From Prasinococcaceae sp. CCMP 1430 (taxonomy: Eukaryota; Plantae; Prasinodermophyta), in assembly GCA_013416795.1 (NCBI GenBank), contig RQSC01001108.1:1-49681 (forward strand): a stretch of 49,681 nt of DNA. Direction: 5' to 3'. Position 1 is the stretch's first letter. Each line of letters begins with the position of its first letter. The notes beneath the pieces are model-generated. The model searched no databases. It had not been told where the DNA came from and saw nothing but the letters and a program-made list of their open reading frames with translations. Positions 1 through 49,194 of this stretch are shown piece after piece. A program made the translations under genes and the position numbers.

Positions 1-1443
1 GGCAGCGGCCGCCCGGGGGCGCGTGCGCCTCACCCTACGACGCGCGGCTGCATTGCTCGCAGCACGAAGCGTGCGCGCGCGCGGCGGCCGCATGCTGCGC
101 GCGTGGCGGGCCGAAGCGGCGGTGACGGCCGCTGCAGGGGCGCGCGCGGCTGCTGAAGCGTCACGAGGCGCACATGATGCGCTCCGCGCGTGGGCATGCG
201 CTGCGGCACGTGAGGCTGCTGCAGGCGCTCGCGAACGAGCGAGCGCGGCCACGGCGCTCGGCACGTGGCGCGCACGAACTGCCACTAGGCGAGCCGCCGT
301 GCATCACGCGGCCGCTGCCGCCGCTACGGAAGCCGCACGCGAGGCGCTGAAGCAAGCCCCTTCAAGTGACACAAAGGGACCTTCAGGTGCGCTGCCGAGC
401 GCGTATGATCGCGCGTGCGAATGCGTGTTGCTGCACTCTCCTGACGCTGCCCAAGCCCCCGACGCACCAGCCCTTACTCCTGCAGATGTCAGCGTGAGCT
501 CGGCGAGCGACCTGTCGAACTTCACCCACAAGCCCGCAACAGATGCGCTCCATCAGCTCGTGGTCGCGACGGGCAGCGCGCATGCGGTCGCCGAGGTCAA
601 GCCCGTCGTGGCGACAAGTTCGAGTGTCGAGGAGACCATCGGGCGTGTGCGCGCGACGCTTGCGTCTATCAGCACGGAGGTCGACGCTGGCGCGGAAGCA
701 CGCGTGGGCAAAAGCGGGGGGGCAGCCCGTACCGCGTCTGCAGGGTCAAAATCTGCTCGGGCTGCACCCGCGCTTGTCAGCGGCAGCGTCGTGTCGCCAC
801 CGCCAGGCCTCGGCAGCCTCGTACGCGCGTCTCCAAGCAGACAGCGCAGGTACGTGCTTCAGGAGGCTAGCGCGTACGGAGTAGGAACGCGCGCGCGCGT
901 GCGCGTGCGCATGTGCACGCGCACGGGCACGGGCATGCTTGCGCATGCGCACGCTCCCACGCTGACCCTCTTCGCCCGCGTTACGCATCGGAACGTCCGT
1001 GCAGCAGCACGATCGCCGCTGCGGCCACAGCGCGTGGCCGCGCATCTGCGGGCGAAGCGCTCATTGCGCGTGCGGCCGTCCCCGTCGCCGTCACCGCTCA
1101 TTCGCCGCTCTCCAGGAAGGTTGCCAGCGTAGCAACACGTGGCAGCATCGACATCGTGCGCCTGGCTCGCTCGCCAGTGCGCCCGCGCGCTCGATCCACG
1201 CAAGCGGCGCGCGAGGCTCTGCCAGGTGCGCCCTCGCACGGCCACAAGCCAGTCGCGCGCAGCCCCACGGCGTCCAGCCCGCTTGTGAGCGCGCTCCGCT
1301 CCGCGGAAGAGCGGATTGGCGCACTCGGCAACGCGATGGAGGCAGCGGTGGTAGCCTCACAGCAGAGGAACTCGCCCGGGGCGCGTCGCATGCCCGCAGG
1401 CGGCGCCCGCGCTGATGGTGGGCGGCGGCTCGACTTCAAATAA
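1..1443 (+). CDS. 3' part of an unknown Ala/Arg-rich protein with SFI1-like (centrin-binding) L-x-x-W repeats; exons <1..849 and 1005..1443
   Basis: The frame is open from the window edge. Intron 850..1004 (cag|GTACGT, gctgac branch point, gtgcAG) is phase-compatible and joins ORF 23+ to ORF 913+, which ends ...RRLDFK*. Repeats LRAW, LRAW and LGTW occur 25-29 aa apart. Confidence 0.55.
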
Positions 1444-1547
1444 TTCACACGCGTACATACGCGCACACACGTGCACACGCGCGCATGCACTGAGCGCCAC
1501 ACGTGCCGCCGCACGCGGGGCACGTGGCGCCAGCCGCGCCGCGCGCC

Positions 1548-4498
1548 ATGCCGCAGCCGCGCGGCTGGACATGGGACGGCGCCCGTGACGCGGCCGGCGC
1601 GCCCCATGGCTTTGGCACCCAGCGCGGCAGCGGCGACCGCGACGGAGATGGTGACGGCAGTGGCGACGCGGAAGCGGCCGTCGACGAGTGCGACTGGGAG
1701 TTCCAGGGCGAGCTCGTGCACGGCGCCCGCGCCGACGCGCGTGGCACGCTGCGCGTGGGCGCGCTGACCTACGTGGGCGCGGAGTGGGGGGGGCGGCACG
1801 GCGGCGCCGAGGTCGGACGCGCGTGTGCGAGCCCACGCGCGCACTCGCTTGTGCAAGCGGACACGCTTGCGCTCCGGCACACGCCATGCGGGCATGGCAT
1901 ATGCACACACATGCGTCAGCACAACGTGCCCGCACTCGGGCGCTTGCTCTCTCGCGCGCATCCGCACTCACTCGCTTACGCGCGCCCTCGCGCCCTCGCG
2001 CGCGTGCTCAAACGCTCACTCACCTGCGCGCCCGCGCGCACTCGCAGGGGCCGAGTGGCGCTGGCTGCCGTATGACTGTCTCGCCGTCGGGCGCATCGCT
2101 CGCTGGGGAGATGCTGCGAGGCGAGCTGCACGGACGCGGTCGGGAGCACGCGCCGCCAGAGGCTGAGGCCGACGTCGATGCCGAGGGCAACGATGGTGGC
2201 GGTGATGACCGTCCCGGCTTGGGCGAGGTTGTCTTCGATGGGCGCTACGAGCGCGGCGCCCGCCACGGCACGGGCGTCGCAGCGCTCGGCGGCGGCGGCG
2301 CGCTGCTCGCGCGCTGGCACGACGGCGAGCTGCCCGAAGGGAGGCACGCTGCCGTGTACGCGTACAGCTGTGCCACGACCGACGGCAAACCGCCCGGGCC
2401 GTGCCTCGGGCCGCGGCTGCTCGGCGTATGGGAAGGCGGAGCGATGCTTCGCGCGGAGTACGCGTCCGCGGCGACCTGGGGTGCACCGCTGCCCGATGCC
2501 TCAGCGGACGGCGAGTTGGCAGCGATCCTCGGAGCGGCAGGCGAGGGCGCGGACGCGGCGGAGGCGGCGCTGGACGAGCTGAGAGGTGCGCACGCGCGGG
2601 CGTCCGGCCGCCTGGCGGAGGCAGGCGCTGCATTCACTCCGGAGCGCGAGTACCCTTTCGGTGGGTGCCCACGTCGCGACCCGTACGAAGCTGCTGCATG
2701 TGAGGCGCGGCCCACGCCCGAGATGGGCATCGGCGAGCATGGCCTCTTCGCCACGCGTGCGCTCCCGGCGGGCGCGACGGCGGCTTTCTTCACAGGCCGT
2801 CCGATTGCAACCCGTGACGTGCGCGCGCGAGGGGGGAATGCCAGCAGCGACGGCGATGGGGGCGGAAACGGGGACGGGCGCGTCAACGCCTTTGTGATCT
2901 TCGGCATCGAAGAGAGCGAAGGTGATGGCGATGGTGACGATGGGGACGCCAGTGGCGGCGGCGGCAACGGCGATGGGGACGACGGTGATAATATGGACGA
3001 CGACAGCACCAGAAATGATTGCAGCAATGCCGGTGACAATGCTGATGGTGTGGACGGCGACGGCGACGAGAATGAGGTCGACGGCGGCAGTGACACTAGC
3101 GGGGAATGCAATGGGGACGGCGAGGACGAGTGCATTGAGGTGCCGTTCGAGCTTGCCTTGCCGCGCGAGGGCCCAGGCGCCTGCCCACACGGCGCCACGC
3201 TGGGCCATCTGGCGCACCACAGCGGTGCGCCGAGCTGCGAGCTTGTCCGCGTGGAGCACCCGCGCTTCCCGCTGGGATGCGCCGCGCTGGTGGCGCGGCG
3301 CTCGCTGGCCGCCGGTGACGAGCTCACGCTGGACTACGCTGTATGCGCGCCGCTACGCACGCGGTACGCGGACTGTCTTGGAGAGGCGGGGTATTACTAC
3401 CATCTGCGCACGGCGCCATGTGTGGAGCTTTACAGGTGCGTGATTCCAGCAATCGCGGGCTGCTGGCATCACACCTGCACCTACACGCGCACACGCACGC
3501 GCGCGTGCGGACACGCTCGTGCGAGTTGCCCCAGCCAGAGGCACGTCGATGCGTGCACGCCTTCTGACATGAGTGCCCGCGCTGCCCCTCTCTACGCGGG
3601 CTTCAAAAGCGCATCCTCGCGCGTAGCGGCACACGGCACGCTGCGCGTGACGCGCCACGGCCCCTGGCGCGTGCTTTGGTTCGGCGCCACCGAACAAGGC
3701 CTCAGCCGGGCGCGCGTGGCGAGCGCAGAAAGGAGTGAGAGCGGTGGGGACTGCCCAGAGGAGCACGACCCGCGCGCACTCGGCTTTGAGTACATCGCTA
3801 CGATGGCACGACACGCCGAGGTAGAGCTGCGTGCGCGATGGCTGCCAGCTGAGCTCGAGCCGCGAGCGAGCGCTCCCACGCGCGGTTGTGAGGTGGCGTG
3901 CGTGGGTCTCGGAACGGGCGCACTCCCCGCGTACCTCGCGCACGCGCTCGGTGGCATCGGCGCGCGCGTGACTGCCGTCGAGCTCGACTCGGACGTCGTG
4001 AGCATCGCGCAGGAGGTGCTAGGAGTAGCCATGCGCGTGCGTCGGGGTGGGCGTGGCGAAGGGGAACGCTCGCCTAAGCGCGCGCGGGCGGGCGACCAGG
4101 ATGGTGGCGAGGTGAGCGCGAGCGCCCACGCGTTTGATGTGGTGGTGTGCGACGCGGCCGAGTGGTTCGAGGAGCATTGCGCAGGTGGCCTGGCGGCCGT
4201 GCTCCTGGACGCGTACGACGCCGAGGGCAAGGTCCCCAGCCACCTTAAGGAGCCCGCATTCTTGCGGCGCATGGGCGCCAGCCTGGCGCCCGGCGGCATT
4301 GCCGTCGCTAACGTGTGGCGCACGGCGGATGACTTCGAGGAGTTCGTGAACGCTCTCGGCACGGCCGTGTGCGGGCCAGCCGATGGCACGCCAGGGCGCA
4401 CGCAAGCGGGCGCGCAGAGGGTGCGCGTGGAGCGCGTGGCGCGCGACGACGTCAACGTGACGCTCGTGGCGGTCAAGCCAGGTTTGCCTGGTCTTTGA
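1548..4498 (+). CDS. SETD7: SET7/9 (SETD7)-like MORN+SET lysine methyltransferase fused to a C-terminal class I (spermidine synthase/METTL13-CTD-like) SAM-dependent methyltransferase; exons 1548..1811, 2048..3435, ~3610..4498
   Basis: Colinear with SET7/9 motifs: GAPHGFGT, FQGELVHG, VFDGRYERGARHG, DPYE, GEHGLF, ATLGHLAHHS, HPRF and ELTLDY. The second domain has VGLGTGALP, VTAVELDSDVV, VVCDA, LLDAYD and LAPGGIAVANVW. Intron 1812..2047 is phase 0. The second donor is at 3436, but its acceptor is uncertain; the frame is open across it regardless. Confidence 0.85.
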
Positions 4499-4503
4499 CC
4501 CTC

Positions 4504-4508
4504 TGTAA
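4504..4508 (+). promoter_or_regulatory. TGTAA chlorophyte-type polyadenylation signal
   Basis: TGTAA lies 5 nt after the stop of the SET/methyltransferase gene. The same motif follows other stops (13651, 28696; minus strand 7585 and 35735). Confidence 0.65.
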
Positions 4509-4629
4509 CAAACGCGTTGATCGATCCCGGTGCCTGCGAGTACGTGCCACTCGCCGCGCGCGCGCATGCGTGCGCGCGGCGCGTCCGCGCCGGCGCGCAC
4601 GCAGGCGCAGGCGTACCGGCTCTGAGGAG

Positions 4630-5795
4630 ATGCGGCCGCCATGTGCTCTGGGTAATGGTCCACCAGCGCGTGCGCGAACCCGCGCCGCGCGCGGCGCATT
4701 CCGCGCCCTGCACGCCTCCTCCTCGCGACGGCGGGGCGCGCGCGCGAAGCGCTCGCGCTCGCCGTGGCGCTCTCCGCGCTCGCAGCGCTCATGACACTTG
4801 TGGTGACATCGGTGAAGCACCAGGCGGCGTGCGCGCGTGCGCCCGCGTGGGCGGGCCGCGTGGGAGAGGCGCGGCCGCGCATCGCACTGGTCACGCTGGC
4901 AGATGGCGGCGGTCCAGCGGCTGCGGCCCACTCCTCGGGCGCGCGCTCGTTCGGCGGCGTGCTGGCGCTGCAGACGGCGTCGTTCGCAGCGTACGCGCGC
5001 ATGCATGCATACGCCAACCTCGATGCGAGCGACGTCTTATCGCCAGAATGGCGCGAGAACGAGTCGCTCGAGGGCGCCGACTCGTACCTCGGCGCCTCGT
5101 GGTACAAGATTGCCGCGGTGCGGCGTGCGCTCTTCGGCAATGGCGGCCACGAGTATGACTGGGTGCTGTGGCACGACGCCGACACGCTACTCGCCAACGC
5201 GAGGTTACCGCTTGAGACGCTGCTGCCCACAGGAGAGGGGCCCGGTGATGGCGGCCCGCACTTCATCGTGAGCGAGGACGCGGGCGGCTTCAACGCGGGC
5301 GTGTGGCTCGCACGGCGAAGCGAGTGGACAGACGGCTTCCTTGAGGAGTGGTGGGGGATGCGCGACGAGTATGCTCGAGGGAGGGGCGACACCAAGTCCG
5401 GCGACAACGATGCGCTCAAGGCGCTGCTCGCACGGACCCTGGGGGGTGCCGACGCAGCGCGCGTGGGCGTGCTGCCGCAGTGCGCCTTCAACTCATACTA
5501 CACGTCGCGCGCGCTGCTGCCGCGCACCTATGGCGAAGCCAAGGTGCGTGCGACTGCGTTCGCGCGAGTGGCAGCGCCCCAAACGCACAAACACTAACGT
5601 GCCACGCACGCACACGCGCACGCACAAACACGCGCACACCCTCCCATGCAGATGCGCGCTCGCGCCGTGCTACGCTGGCTCCGCACAGGCCAACGCACGT
5701 TCTACGCGCCCGGCGACCTGCTGGTCCACTTCGCCGGCGTGGACGACAAGGCCGCCGCCATGCGCGACATGGCCGCGTCGCTCGCCCGCGTGTGA
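4630..5795 (+). CDS. Glycosyltransferase family 34 (GMA12/MNN10-like), type II membrane protein; intron 5544..5651; start region needs a 1-nt frame correction
   Basis: Motifs SWYKIAAV, YDWVLWHDAD (DxD), FNAGVWL, FNSY and LLVHFAG, with an N-terminal TM segment ALALAVALSALAALMTLVV. Intron aag|GTGCGT...catgcAG is phase 0. The ATG at 4630 is one frame off the TM frame. Confidence 0.85.
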
Positions 5796-17272: not shown

Positions 17273-17613
17273 NNNNNNNNNNNNNNNNNNNNNNNNNNNN
17301 NNNNNNNNNNNNNNNNNNNNNNNNNNNNNNNNNNNNNNNNNNNNNNNNNNNNNNNNNNNNNNNNNNNNNNNNNNNNNNNNNNNNNNNNNNNNNNNNNNNN
17401 NNNNNNNNNNNNNNNNNNNNNNNNNNNNNNNNNNNNNNNNNNNNNNNNNNNNNNNNNNNNNNNNNNNNNNNNNNNNNNNNNNNNNNNNNNNNNNNNNNNN
17501 NNNNNNNNNNNNNNNNNNNNNNNNNNNNNNNNNNNNNNNNNNNNNNNNNNNNNNNNNNNNNNNNNNNNNNNNNNNNNNNNNNNNNNNNNNNNNNNNNNNN
17601 NNNNNNNNNNNNN
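17273..17613. other. Assembly gap (other gaps: 23131-23628, 29582-29907, 38168-38296, 41543-41808, 49087-49194)
   Basis: Runs of N in the sequence. Confidence 1.
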
Positions 17614-23111: not shown

Positions 23112-23628
23112 TGCCGCAGCATGACAGTGGNNNNNNNNNNNNNNNNNNNNNNNNNNNNNNNNNNNNNNNNNNNNNNNNNNNNNNNNNNNNNNNNNNNNNN
23201 NNNNNNNNNNNNNNNNNNNNNNNNNNNNNNNNNNNNNNNNNNNNNNNNNNNNNNNNNNNNNNNNNNNNNNNNNNNNNNNNNNNNNNNNNNNNNNNNNNNN
23301 NNNNNNNNNNNNNNNNNNNNNNNNNNNNNNNNNNNNNNNNNNNNNNNNNNNNNNNNNNNNNNNNNNNNNNNNNNNNNNNNNNNNNNNNNNNNNNNNNNNN
23401 NNNNNNNNNNNNNNNNNNNNNNNNNNNNNNNNNNNNNNNNNNNNNNNNNNNNNNNNNNNNNNNNNNNNNNNNNNNNNNNNNNNNNNNNNNNNNNNNNNNN
23501 NNNNNNNNNNNNNNNNNNNNNNNNNNNNNNNNNNNNNNNNNNNNNNNNNNNNNNNNNNNNNNNNNNNNNNNNNNNNNNNNNNNNNNNNNNNNNNNNNNNN
23601 NNNNNNNNNNNNNNNNNNNNNNNNNNNN

Positions 23629-29367: not shown

Positions 29368-31492
29368 ATGGCGTCGACGGCGGCCGCCGTCGCGAGGTGC
29401 GCAAAAACATTTTTGGGGAGAATTATGATACAGCCGTGCTTGTGTGCGAGGCGATTAGGACGCCTGCGCGTGGGAATGTGGGCTTGTTGTTGTTTCGGGC
29501 GCGTAGGCATTCGCGCGCGTGCGTGCGGGCGATGACGTGCTGCGTTGAGCCACGCACGCACGCACGCGCTATCGTGGATTGNNNNNNNNNNNNNNNNNNN
29601 NNNNNNNNNNNNNNNNNNNNNNNNNNNNNNNNNNNNNNNNNNNNNNNNNNNNNNNNNNNNNNNNNNNNNNNNNNNNNNNNNNNNNNNNNNNNNNNNNNNN
29701 NNNNNNNNNNNNNNNNNNNNNNNNNNNNNNNNNNNNNNNNNNNNNNNNNNNNNNNNNNNNNNNNNNNNNNNNNNNNNNNNNNNNNNNNNNNNNNNNNNNN
29801 NNNNNNNNNNNNNNNNNNNNNNNNNNNNNNNNNNNNNNNNNNNNNNNNNNNNNNNNNNNNNNNNNNNNNNNNNNNNNNNNNNNNNNNNNNNNNNNNNNNN
29901 NNNNNNNCCGGCGCGCCGCGGCGCGCGGGAGGCGCGCCTGGGGGCGGTGTGCGCTTCGACGGCGGGCGCGGCAGCACATCCTTCGCATCTCCGTCCCTCC
30001 CGCCGCGCAAGCACGTCGCCAAGGCCGCAGGCAGTCGCAGCAGTGGCGGAGGTGGCGAATACGGTGGATACGGCGGCGGCAGTGGCGGCGGCGGTGGGTA
30101 CAGTGGCGGCAGCGGCGGCAGCAGCGGCGGCAGCGGCGGCGGCGGCAGCGGCGGCGGCGGCGGCGGCGACGAATTCAAGGTCCCGCGCCTGTCCCTCGCC
30201 GTGCTGGCCGCATTCGCGGGCGGCTTCTACTACGCGTTCAAGCGTTTCGTGTCTGAGCCCCTGAAGCTCAAGGAGGAGGAGGAAGCCAAGGCCGCCGAGG
30301 CCGCCAAGGCGGCGGCGGCCGCCGCCGCCGCCGCTGCGGCCGCGGCAGCCGCTGCTGAGGCTCCCCCGCCTCCACCGGCGTTGGCGACTGCGCCGGCCCC
30401 TGAAGTTAAGGCCGAGGACGTCGTCGAAGTCACCGATGAGCCGACAGACACGCCTCTTCCCGTGGTGTACGAGGATCTGGATGAGGAGGACGAAGACCCT
30501 GTCGTCATCTTCAAGTCGCTCAACGAGTCCTACGACGCTGTCGGAGGCAAGTTCAAGATCGTGTCCAAGGCGACGCTGCGCGGCGGCCACGCGCTGACGG
30601 TGACGGGGCTCGCGAATGTCACCTCCATCCGTAACGGCGCGCTCATCGATGGCCTGTCCTTGCCGAGCGCGTCGCTGAAGCACAACGGGAGCGGTGTGGA
30701 AGGTTCGGTAGACTTGGGCAAGAACAAGGTGTCCCTGAAGCTGCCGTTGATCGAATCCAAGACGCCCAAGCTCGACGCGCACGCCACGTTCGAGGTGAGT
30801 CCCCCCTCTGCTCCCCCTTCTTTCCTTTGCCCCAGCACGCCACCACCGTGTGTTGCTCGCGGGCTTTGCCGTGCGCGCGCGCGCGCACGCAGCGCAGCGC
30901 TGACCCGGCCTGCCTCCGCTTGCGCTTTTTGCGGCCCTTGGTGCAGAGCGGGAAAGGGCTGCCGACGCTCGACGCCAAGTATATCGTGGGTGATGAGGCG
31001 CCCGAGCTGCTTGAGGGCGCGTCGGTGAAGGCGACGTTTGATGCGGCGAGCAAGAAGGCTAGCCTCAAGACCGAGATGAAGCACGAGGCCGAGCTGGCTG
31101 GGTACGACGCGGACCTCGTCTACAAGCTTGAAAGCGTCGTCAAGGACGGCGCCTCCAAGGGTGGCCTCGCGATGGCCGCCGACCTGGACGTCGTGCCCTC
31201 GGTGCGCCTCGCAGCCGCCCTTGGCACAATCAGCGGTGACAAGGAGGATGCGTGCGACGGCGGGGCGCGCCTCGCTGCCAGCGTGGCGCCGTACGATCCG
31301 CTCAACCTCAAGCTGACGGCGTCCATGATCGCCAACACGGAGGGCTCGCTCTACACCAAGCTGTCGGCCGAGAGCAGCGTCGAGGTGCCAGATGTGCTGG
31401 GCGGCATTCAGCTGGTCGCCATGGCCTCGATCGTGGGCATGGGCAAGGCCAAGGTCGACAAATTCAAGGTCGAGAAGACCTGGAAGTTTTAG
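29368..31492 (+). CDS. Probable plastid envelope protein: transit peptide, poly-Gly, hydrophobic segment, acidic linker and OEP24-like beta-barrel; exons 29368..29396, (gap)..30794, 30947..31492
   Basis: The C-terminal ~300 aa has amphipathic beta-strand patterning and ends KFKVEKTWKF*, resembling the OEP24 terminus. Intron 30795..30946 (GTGAGT...gtgcAG) is phase 0. Confidence 0.55.
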
Positions 31493-37560: not shown

Positions 37561-38296
37561 AAGGTCGAATGAAGGGCGAAATGCCGCGCTGGAAAAATTC
37601 GACGGCGTTTCGATCGAAAGGCGTTTCGTTCTTTCTCTCTTTTATTTCTTTTACGTATTCCTTTCTCTCTGGTATTATCTTGAGTTCGTTTTGGCTTCGG
37701 GTCGTCGGAGAGAAACGTTTTCTTTGCTGCGAAACTCCGTTCTAAAACTTTCATAATTTGGAATGAAAGGCGTCTCTTTTCCCCTTTCTTTTTTTCTTTT
37801 TCTTTTTCTTTTTTCTTTTTCTTTTCTTTTTTTGGCGTGCGTTCGAAAGCGGCGGTTCGAAAGCGCGCGAATGAGGAATTCGCGCGCGCGCGCGCGCGCG
37901 CTCGGGCGGAGGGGCCGGGGGCAGGGTGGCAGGGGGGTGGGAACTGGCAGGGGGGAGGGCGCAGAGGCGCAGGGGGGGGGAAGGAGGGACGCAGGGGCGT
38001 GCCACACAGACACTGCGCGCGCGCGCGCGCGCGCACGTGTGTGCGCGCGCGCACGTGTGTGTGTGTTTGTGCGTGTGTGCGTGCGTGTTCCGCTCGCTTC
38101 CGCTTGCGCTTGCGGCGCGGAGGGGGCGCGGCGTGGCGTGCGGCGTCCGGCGTGGCGCGGGGTCGGGNNNNNNNNNNNNNNNNNNNNNNNNNNNNNNNNN
38201 NNNNNNNNNNNNNNNNNNNNNNNNNNNNNNNNNNNNNNNNNNNNNNNNNNNNNNNNNNNNNNNNNNNNNNNNNNNNNNNNNNNNNNNNNNNNNNNN

Positions 38297-41394: not shown

Positions 41395-42067
41395 CTGCGC
41401 GATGCCACCGCGTTCAGGGGGGCGCGGGACGCGTGCGCGGGCGCTCGGGCGTCAGCGCTCCTCTCCTCTTCCTTGCCGCCGATGGCGGTGCGCGCGCGAC
41501 AGGGCGCTGGCCGCAGGGCGCAGGGCGCGGCGGGCGGCGCATNNNNNNNNNNNNNNNNNNNNNNNNNNNNNNNNNNNNNNNNNNNNNNNNNNNNNNNNNN
41601 NNNNNNNNNNNNNNNNNNNNNNNNNNNNNNNNNNNNNNNNNNNNNNNNNNNNNNNNNNNNNNNNNNNNNNNNNNNNNNNNNNNNNNNNNNNNNNNNNNNN
41701 NNNNNNNNNNNNNNNNNNNNNNNNNNNNNNNNNNNNNNNNNNNNNNNNNNNNNNNNNNNNNNNNNNNNNNNNNNNNNNNNNNNNNNNNNNNNNNNNNNNN
41801 NNNNNNNNGCGCGCGCGCTCCCGCCCTCCGCGCCGCGCGCGCGCGCAACGGGGGAATATAAATACGTCTCCATCAAATAGAAAGCGAACGCGCGCGGAAG
41901 CGGAAGCGGAAGCGGAATCCAAAAAAAAAAAAGGCGGTCAACCCGAGGCACACGCGCGCGCGCGCGCGCGCCATCAAAACGCACGCGCGCCGCGCGCGCG
42001 ATCGAACGCCGCCGAGGCCCGCCATCAAAACGAAGGCGCGCCGCGCCGCGCCGCTCCAGGGGCGCGC

Positions 42068-48692: not shown

Positions 48693-49194
48693 CGTTCCGA
48701 TTCGCGCCGCGACATCCGCCCGTACCATCTGGACTCCACTCGGATGCTGCGAACAGCATTGGGATTCAACAACCCCTTCGATTTGATGGGGGGCGAACGC
48801 GCCCCATCCGAAACATGTGGCTCGCGCGCCCGCGGCGGCTGCGCGCGCCACGCGCGCGCCACGCGCGCGCTGTGCTCCCCCTCCCCCCTACACACACAGA
48901 CACACACACACACACACACTGCCTTCTCTCTGTCTCGCCGCGTCGCGTCGGCGCGCCACACCTTCACCTCGCTGCGCGCCGCCTGCCCGGCCCTCACCTC
49001 CCCAAGCACGATGGCCGTGCGCGCGATGTCGATGTCGGCGTCGGTGTCGACGCCGGGGGCGGCGCGGCGCGCGCGCGCCTCGGCGCNNNNNNNNNNNNNN
49101 NNNNNNNNNNNNNNNNNNNNNNNNNNNNNNNNNNNNNNNNNNNNNNNNNNNNNNNNNNNNNNNNNNNNNNNNNNNNNNNNNNNNNNNNNNNNNN

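Follow-up and report, generated by a model that had tools for sequence, protein, structure and literature searches.

What kind of protein is encoded at positions 1548-4498 of contig RQSC01001108.1 from the alga Prasinococcaceae sp. CCMP 1430 (a stretch of 49,681 nucleotides (nt), called the window below), where a half resembling human SET7/9 (SETD7), with MORN repeats and a SET domain, is followed by a half resembling the C-terminal domain of METTL13 and the spermidine synthases? An earlier note, made from the sequence alone, had proposed that both halves form one fusion gene, and such a gene was found at exactly these coordinates. Indeed, the fusion gene is real and expressed, with one transcript and one reading frame through both halves. 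Our overall reading, which we regard as fairly probable, is that of one expressed three-exon gene whose 846-residue product combines two unrelated modules dependent on S-adenosylmethionine (AdoMet), the second of which would methylate an amine by the mechanism set out below.

Gene structure and transcript

The fusion gene lies on the + strand and comprises 3 exons, from ATG 1548, the first ATG past the upstream in-frame stop, to the stop codon TGA at 4496-4498, with a coding sequence of 2541 nt (846 codons plus stop). Contigs of four sequencing runs were mapped onto 900-5600, two of which, X1 and X2, are small and come from the alga itself, each from a separate study. The parts of the gene and the contigs that cover them are:

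1548..1811, + strand: exon 1, 88 codons, which opens with the start codon and encodes the first of the MORN-like beta-hairpin repeats; aligned with residues 5-74 in the metagenomic relative P0004
1812..2047, + strand: intron 1, 236 nt, GT..AG, placed by homology
2048..3435, + strand: exon 2, with the rest of the MORN-like repeats, the entire SET domain and, from the methyltransferase module, the first conserved motif (open reading frame (ORF), RNA-type contigs, SET7/9 matches)
2046-2243, 2793-3312 and 3406-3433: RNA-type contigs of exon 2, from the mapping; an X1 contig begins at 2046
3436..3609, + strand: intron 2, 174 nt, GT..AG, in frame, containing ATG 3569; joint in X1 and X2, alignment gap in P0004 and in the Tara contig L003
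3610..4498, + strand: exon 3, with an N-terminal beta-sheet subdomain, a seven-beta-strand Rossmann core and TGA 4496-4498 (AlphaFold2 model, profile, Foldseek, RNA contigs)
3608-3866, 3899-4175, 4009-4275 and 4255-4467: RNA contigs of exon 3, from the mapping

Intron 2 is spliced out in the contigs of both X1 and X2, with GT..AG ends, and the SET exon is joined in frame to the methyltransferase exon (3435|3610; as mapped, the joint is 3433>3608, cut +2, in X1 and X2), with flanks of 72 + 259 letters in X1 and 28 + 128 letters in X2. The single transcript across 3436-3610, which the earlier note had proposed to look for, is what these contigs display. X1 and X2 contain exonic parts only (shares 0.41 and 0.23) and leave the intergenic stretch 900-1684 upstream of the gene uncovered; two seawater metatranscriptomes include 4235-4492. 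In addition, the ORF 1688-4498 (+, 936 codons) is stop-free through both halves, as had been predicted; since the 174 nt of intron 2 are a multiple of three, this ORF reads straight across the intron. No N runs occur within the locus. Note that searches were run with single exons or with the stop-free in-frame stretch 2048-4495, which retains intron 2.

The frame shifts at intron 1, with residue 74 of P0004 at the end of exon 1 and residue 75 at the start of exon 2, and intron 1 was placed only from homology because no spliced joint was reported there. Near this place, an X1 contig agrees with exon 1 over 1685-1761 only and continues with 255 unlike letters; it is probably the transcript of a paralogous MORN-repeat gene. 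A very deep contig from elsewhere (depth 182) matches 3488-3504, and the apparent RNA depth across intron 2 is therefore inflated. ACACGC-type microsatellite tracts are found at 1440-1480, upstream of the gene, and at 3470-3510, in intron 2.

The two halves of the product

The N-terminal half is specifically SETD7-like, i.e., a MORN-type N-domain followed by a SET domain, and this is unambiguous with the family profile. The window alone, when compared with solved structures, matches SET7/9 best (E 2.6e-6) over three colinear stretches: one in the MORN-like region, one with D-P-Y-E and the first strands of the SET domain, and one with the cofactor motif and the Tyr motif. The profile of 21 relatives reaches E 2e-52 against human SET7/9 (98 bits for the N-domain and 82 bits for the SET domain), its positions 67-184 being aligned to residues 7-123 of SET7/9 in the N-domain, and the profile gives E>0.01 against other SET proteins. 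The AlphaFold model of the N-terminal half has a mean predicted local distance difference test score (pLDDT) of 60, poor overall because of disordered inserts, with cores at 70-90; serial beta-hairpins are seen in the model. With this model, the first 36 Foldseek matches are all SET7/9, and VIA-align gives Z 15.3 for SET7/9 (138 residues, root-mean-square deviation 2.8 Å, 27% identity) versus Z ~11 for MLL1 and SET8, the next SET families. The features of the SET domain are:

2678..2797, + strand: N-terminal part of the SET domain, D-P-Y-E to A-F-F-T-G, with Phe at the place of SET7/9 Tyr245 (phmmer to SET7/9, family alignment)
2837..3127, + strand: low-complexity insert in the SET domain, ~97 codons, Gly/Asp/Asn-rich, kept in RNA
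3200..3223, + strand: SET cofactor motif, L-G-H-L-A-H-H-S, where SET7/9 has N-H-S (alignments)
3317..3340, + strand: SET catalytic Tyr motif, E-L-T-L-D-Y, with the Tyr335 equivalent, aligned with E-L-T-V-A-Y of SET7/9

The window copy retains the Tyr335 equivalent, the G-x-G-L-F strand and the H-P-x-F motif. Among the relatives, the canonical A-N-H is present in about six clusters (P0018, P0022, P0025, P0034, P0045 and P0072), and the cofactor motif of P0004 is H-H-E. The insert (27 Gly, 25 Asp and 10 Asn among its 97 residues) is modelled with pLDDT <50 and is absent from P0004. It was considered as a third intron and this was ruled out; the Gly/Asp-rich stretch is coding, because an X2 contig crosses 2793-3312 without a gap.

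The C-terminal half was assigned beforehand as similar to the METTL13 C-terminal domain and to spermidine synthases, and the profile of 32 relatives agrees: its best match is the METTL13 C-terminal domain 5WCJ (E 1.4e-12), followed by the bacterial spermidine-synthase-like protein 3GJY (E 1.2e-11) and by true spermidine synthases (E ~1e-6). The C-terminal half of the window alone matches a spermidine synthase in the PDB at E ~0.7 (PDB matches at E about 0.4-0.8), which was uninformative, and only the family profile made the assignment unambiguous. The AlphaFold2 model of exon 3 (pLDDT 84.8, predicted template modelling score 0.86) displays an N-terminal beta-sheet subdomain, with strands at model residues 10-36, and a Rossmann core; Foldseek with this model retrieves 3GJY, spermidine synthases and 5WCJ, all with probability 1.0 and alignments of ~300 columns. 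A conserved F-x-Y motif ahead of the Rossmann core is aligned with 3GJY. The motifs of this module are:

3383..3406, + strand: E-A-G-Y-Y-Y-H-L, start of the methyltransferase module; Glu invariant in all fused relatives; the motif occurs in stand-alone relatives as well
3905..3913, + strand: motif I G-L-G (then T-G); G99, L100 and G101 invariant in the family alignment; aligned to Arabidopsis spermidine synthase
3980..3982, + strand: Post I Glu, equal to METTL13 Glu524; conserved in >=90% of the family; aligned to 5WCJ
4208..4219, + strand: Post II D-A-Y-D; the first Asp equals METTL13 Asp575 and spermidine synthase Asp173, and the second Asp has the spermidine-synthase spacing

In the alignment of fused relatives, E446, G448 and Y450 are invariant, and the E-A-G-Y-Y motif is shared with the stand-alone proteins P0009, P0010, P0014 and P0016. 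Since the codons of this motif follow immediately on the SET domain, within exon 2, it is the methyltransferase module itself that intron 2 interrupts, and not the junction of the two modules. The motif II Asp (D181) and the first Post II Asp (D200) are likewise invariant in the family and align to METTL13 Asp551 and Asp575. The column of METTL13 Asp577 (D-V-D) holds Tyr in the window, and the second Asp comes one position later, as in D-S-S-D of spermidine synthase. Where the spermidine-synthase loop G-G-G-D-G has its Asp, the window has Thr (G-L-G-T-G) and the family consensus Ala. In spermidine synthase structures this Asp disfavours the carboxylate of AdoMet, and its absence therefore fits AdoMet and not decarboxylated AdoMet. 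The two Asp of the spermidine synthase D-x-x-D hold and deprotonate the amine. Our own reading of these motifs is that the C-terminal half would use AdoMet to methylate a primary amine, either a protein N-terminus or a polyamine-like one.

Conservation of the fusion and its surroundings

Judged from the sequences compared, the fusion is neither an isolated case nor an artefact of annotation; it defines an old and conserved family found in green algae and marine protists. A word-based search with exon 3 returned three proteins only, one of them on L003; the exhaustive search returned 230 representative proteins at E<=0.001 (71 at E<=1e-10), and many relatives of exon 3 are 680-1030 residues long and match at their C-terminal end. 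MORN, SET7_N or SET Pfam matches were found in 18 of the 20 long relatives scanned, and when the 150 best-matching representative clusters of the C-terminal domain were scanned with a local hidden Markov model (HMM), at least 26 contained the SET half, 6 of them from outside the HMM training set. P0004 (757 residues), which occurs on many contigs, aligns colinearly with both halves of the window ORF (E 3e-88) and is ~43% identical to it in the SET half; the gaps of this alignment fall exactly at intron 2, which P0004 does not have, and at the acidic insert. In L003, the SET end, the linker and the methyltransferase follow each other uninterrupted, with no intron at the position of intron 2 of the window. 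The orthologues are thus not always separate genes, a possibility raised in the earlier note, since P0004, L003 and other relatives are fused.

A tree built from the C-terminal module groups 25 of the 27 fused rows into a single clade (Shimodaira-Hasegawa-like approximate likelihood ratio test 92); the window and P0004 are found together as a sister-like group within the same unresolved cluster, and two well-supported clades contain short stand-alone proteins only. Named members include XP_003079909.2 of Ostreococcus tauri, labelled 'MORN motif' ('SET domain-containing protein' in another strain), and KAJ1632837.1 of the pavlovalean haptophyte Pavlovales sp. CCMP2436, labelled 'hypothetical protein'; Atlas clusters of 833 and 707 residues, with Chlorophyta as the commonest taxon, are also labelled hypothetical. 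The literature search found no description of a SETD7-like/METTL13-like fusion. The family is undescribed, though already in databases as uncharacterised proteins. The earlier suggestion of an undescribed architecture holds as far as the literature goes, and has to be qualified on two counts: the family is conserved in databases, and SET together with a spermidine-synthase-like domain also occurs in diatoms.

The C-terminal module also occurs in other contexts. A SET domain upstream of the 35%-identical relative on L001/L002 was looked for and ruled out, the upstream ORF being unrelated, so that stand-alone forms of the module do exist. The stand-alone relatives (P0009, P0010, P0014, P0016 and L001:2388-3869) are ~310-490 residues long and form two separate clades, and several stand-alone relatives start with Arg/Ala/Ser-rich stretches resembling organelle-targeting presequences. 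In eight further clusters (P0021, P0023, P0054, P0055, P0057, P0060, P0075 and P0140), the methyltransferase module, including E-x-G-Y, follows a different N-terminal region that gives no SET/MORN signal; one of them comes from the diplonemid Namystynia karyoxenos and one has a faint ARM-repeat match.

Some irregularities were noticed in the fused relatives L003 and P0004. L003 carries at 853-972 a 101-nt insertion in the methyltransferase region, flanked by a perfect 19-nt direct duplication (G-A-C-G-C-C-A-A-G-G...), which shifts the frame, has no GT..AG ends in any register and is absent from P0004 (same gene, other contigs); an artefact of assembly, a recent insertion and an unusual intron are all conceivable. 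At L003:200-215, a one-base frame disruption affects the SET motif E-x-T-L-D-Y in this low-coverage contig, and P0004 is intact there. In P0004, a Cys/Arg-rich stretch at residues ~92-165, without counterpart in the window, interrupts a MORN repeat; it resembles an in-frame intron that the gene caller used on the metagenome took for coding sequence.

Downstream of the fusion gene, the next gene (4764-5597, +) encodes a glycosyltransferase family 34 domain (GMA12/MNN10-type, Pfam E 1.1e-11) and has its own RNA-type contigs at 4976-5548. Several contigs end loosely at 4560-4680, between both genes; the fusion gene must have its 3' end, and the glycosyltransferase gene its 5' end, within this interval. 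The window contains six N runs, i.e., assembly gaps (17273-17613, 23131-23628, 29582-29907, 38168-38296, 41543-41808 and 49087-49194), none of them near the fusion gene, and the apparent low-GC kilobases of the composition profile result from these runs.

Mechanism, alternatives and known systems

For the cofactor, the acceptor, the substrate and the activity of the SET half, we infer the following scheme. The C-terminal module would bind AdoMet through the G-L-G of motif I and the Post I Glu, and would methylate a primary amine held by the D-x-x-D pair of Post II; a protein N-terminus is the most probable such amine, and a polyamine-like one is less probable. The same substrate would be bound by the SETD7-like module, which would either methylate a lysine of it, which is plausible with the canonical N-H, or mainly dock it, in the lineages with a decayed motif. 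Either role may apply to the SET module of the window copy, with its H-H. By analogy, the idea of the earlier note that two marks are placed on one substrate would still be reasonable.

An alternative to a single gene is that two adjacent genes are read through by chance, with a SET gene ending at ~3435 and a methyltransferase gene starting from ATG 3569. Chance long ORFs are common at the ~70% G+C of the window, a prokaryote-style gene call (P0001, 309 residues) starts precisely at ATG 3569, and stand-alone relatives of the C-terminal module exist (L001 and the two stand-alone clades). In contrast, the contigs of two studies splice 3435 to 3610 and thereby remove ATG 3569, the SET frame is stop-free until 4496, and intronless relatives have both halves in one ORF. 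The separate start near 3569 for which the earlier note had allowed is thus inside a spliced intron, and the E-A-G-Y-Y motif of the module is encoded upstream of it, in exon 2. Altogether, we consider chance read-through of two genes highly improbable. Another explanation accepts the fusion and takes the C-terminal module as an aminopropyltransferase using decarboxylated AdoMet, in which case the SET domain would N-methylate the polyamine product or a polyamine-modified protein. The D-x-x-D spacing of D-A-Y-D, the N-terminal beta-sheet subdomain and the ~300 columns aligned with spermidine synthases and 3GJY would fit such an enzyme; some sources name relatives 'spermidine synthase', and a diatom cluster of the Atlas combines Spermine_synth and AdoMet_dc with SET in 30% of its members (score 0.85, a lead only). 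These points are countered by the Thr of the window and the Ala of the consensus in place of the G-G-G-D-G Asp, and by the best profile match, which is a proven methyltransferase. Moreover, Pfam Spermine_synth (PF01564) gives no match to the window protein and weak ones to no more than 5 of the 32 relatives (best E 3.6e-4), and the AdoMet decarboxylase (AdoMetDC) domain (PF02675) has no match at E<=1 across the whole ORF. An aminopropyltransferase, argued by analogy, therefore seems unlikely.

The alternative that we take most seriously, and to which we give a little less than an even chance, is that the SETD7-like half of the window copy is catalytically dead and serves substrate recruitment only, the sole activity being C-terminal. 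It would account for H-H-S in the window and H-H-E in P0004, for the absence of the motif in Ostreococcus-type and P0005-type members, and for the ~97-residue disordered insert that interrupts the SET domain, when all cofactor residues of the C-terminal module are by contrast conserved. However, the Tyr335 equivalent, the G-x-G-L-F strand and H-P-x-F are kept, about six relatives have the canonical A-N-H, and the H-H is common to two orthologues that are only ~43% identical in the SET half, which suggests selection.

Several observations also weigh against our preferred reading of one expressed gene with two AdoMet-dependent modules. For the transcript, the 'RNA' label of X1 and X2 is a tool guess only, the coverage pattern being nonetheless such as RNA gives; exon 1 is without a clean RNA contig because the X1 contig diverges after 1761, and exon 1 and intron 1 are supported by homology. 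With the window alone, Pfam scores stay below threshold for SET (18.5 bits, cut-off 22.4), MORN (16.1, cut-off 22.5) and Methyltransf_25 (21.7, cut-off 27). For the SET half, the earlier statement that it follows SET7/9 motif by motif goes too far: the cofactor motif is H-H-S in place of N-H-S (Asn296-His297), Tyr245 is Phe and Tyr305 is Leu in the mono-methylation pocket, and the post-SET R-P-x-W segment (Trp352), present in canonical relatives, is missing from the window and P0004. In addition, the cofactor motif is lost entirely in Ostreococcus-type and P0005-type members, so that at least some of the family would do without SET catalysis; the H-H motif and this decay in several lineages weaken the idea of two marks. 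For the C-terminal half, the function-unassigned bacterial 3GJY (1.2e-11) is about equally close as METTL13 (1.4e-12), and the Post II spacing is of the aminopropyltransferase type.

At a more speculative level, the fusion might be an ancient protist dual-mark enzyme convergent on the logic of METTL13, in which the C-terminal module would methylate the N-terminal amine of a single abundant protein (eEF1A being the obvious candidate) and the SET module a nearby lysine, animal SETD7 being a descendant minus the second module; we give this reading little credence. Each of the two halves falls in a well-studied family of human enzymes, SETD7 and METTL13 respectively, and their conserved fusion may act as a 'Rosetta stone', which predicts that both modules act on one substrate. 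It thus offers a handle on the role of spermidine-synthase-like methyltransferases outside animals, on the origin of SETD7, and on whether SET turns into a non-catalytic reader in some lineages. Ostreococcus tauri, a tractable model, carries a family member.

Among known systems, diatom fusions of AdoMetDC and an aminopropyltransferase, some with SET, were reportedly proposed by Michael (FEBS Lett, 2011) to make and N-methylate long-chain polyamines, and the diatom Spermine_synth/AdoMet_dc/SET cluster of the Atlas presumably represents these fusions. To our knowledge, they are the only published precedent for SET and a spermidine-synthase-fold domain in one polypeptide. They carry an AdoMet decarboxylase together with a genuine bacterial-type Spermine_synth domain, whereas the algal protein has neither an AdoMetDC domain nor a Spermine_synth match. 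With spermidine synthases and 3GJY, the algal protein shares the fold with an N-terminal beta-sheet subdomain and the D-x-x-D in Post II, and with 3GJY also the F-x-Y motif preceding the Rossmann core; it differs from spermidine synthases by its Gly-rich loop without an acidic residue and, again, by the missing Pfam match.

The domain order recalls that of METTL13 (eEF1A-KNMT), in which a lysine-methyltransferase-type module also lies upstream of a spermidine-synthase-like module in one polypeptide. The spermidine-synthase-like C-terminal domain of METTL13 trimethylates the N-terminal amine of eEF1A, with Glu524 and Asp575 needed for activity, and its seven-beta-strand N-terminal domain methylates Lys55 (PMC6109062). 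The motif I Gly (Gly503), the Post I Glu, the motif II Asp and the first Post II Asp are common to the algal module and MT13-C (5WCJ), and the Gly-loop Asp of spermidine synthases is absent in both. In contrast, the upstream module is SET in the alga and a seven-beta-strand lysine methyltransferase (MT13-N) in METTL13, Pfam scans of the window ORF and relatives giving no class I methyltransferase match upstream of the C-terminal module, and Post II reads D-A-Y-D in the alga versus D-V-D-S in METTL13. Human SETD7 differs by its N-H-S, Tyr245, Tyr305 and post-SET Trp segment, all changed or missing in the algal copy, which has in addition the ~97-residue acidic SET insert and the extra C-terminal methyltransferase module. 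Nevertheless, SETD7 is by a wide margin the best sequence and structure match of the N-terminal half, with the same MORN-type beta-hairpin N-domain followed by SET and with the Tyr335 equivalent and the H-P-R-F motif kept in the algal protein, and human SETD7 ends about where the second module of the algal protein begins.

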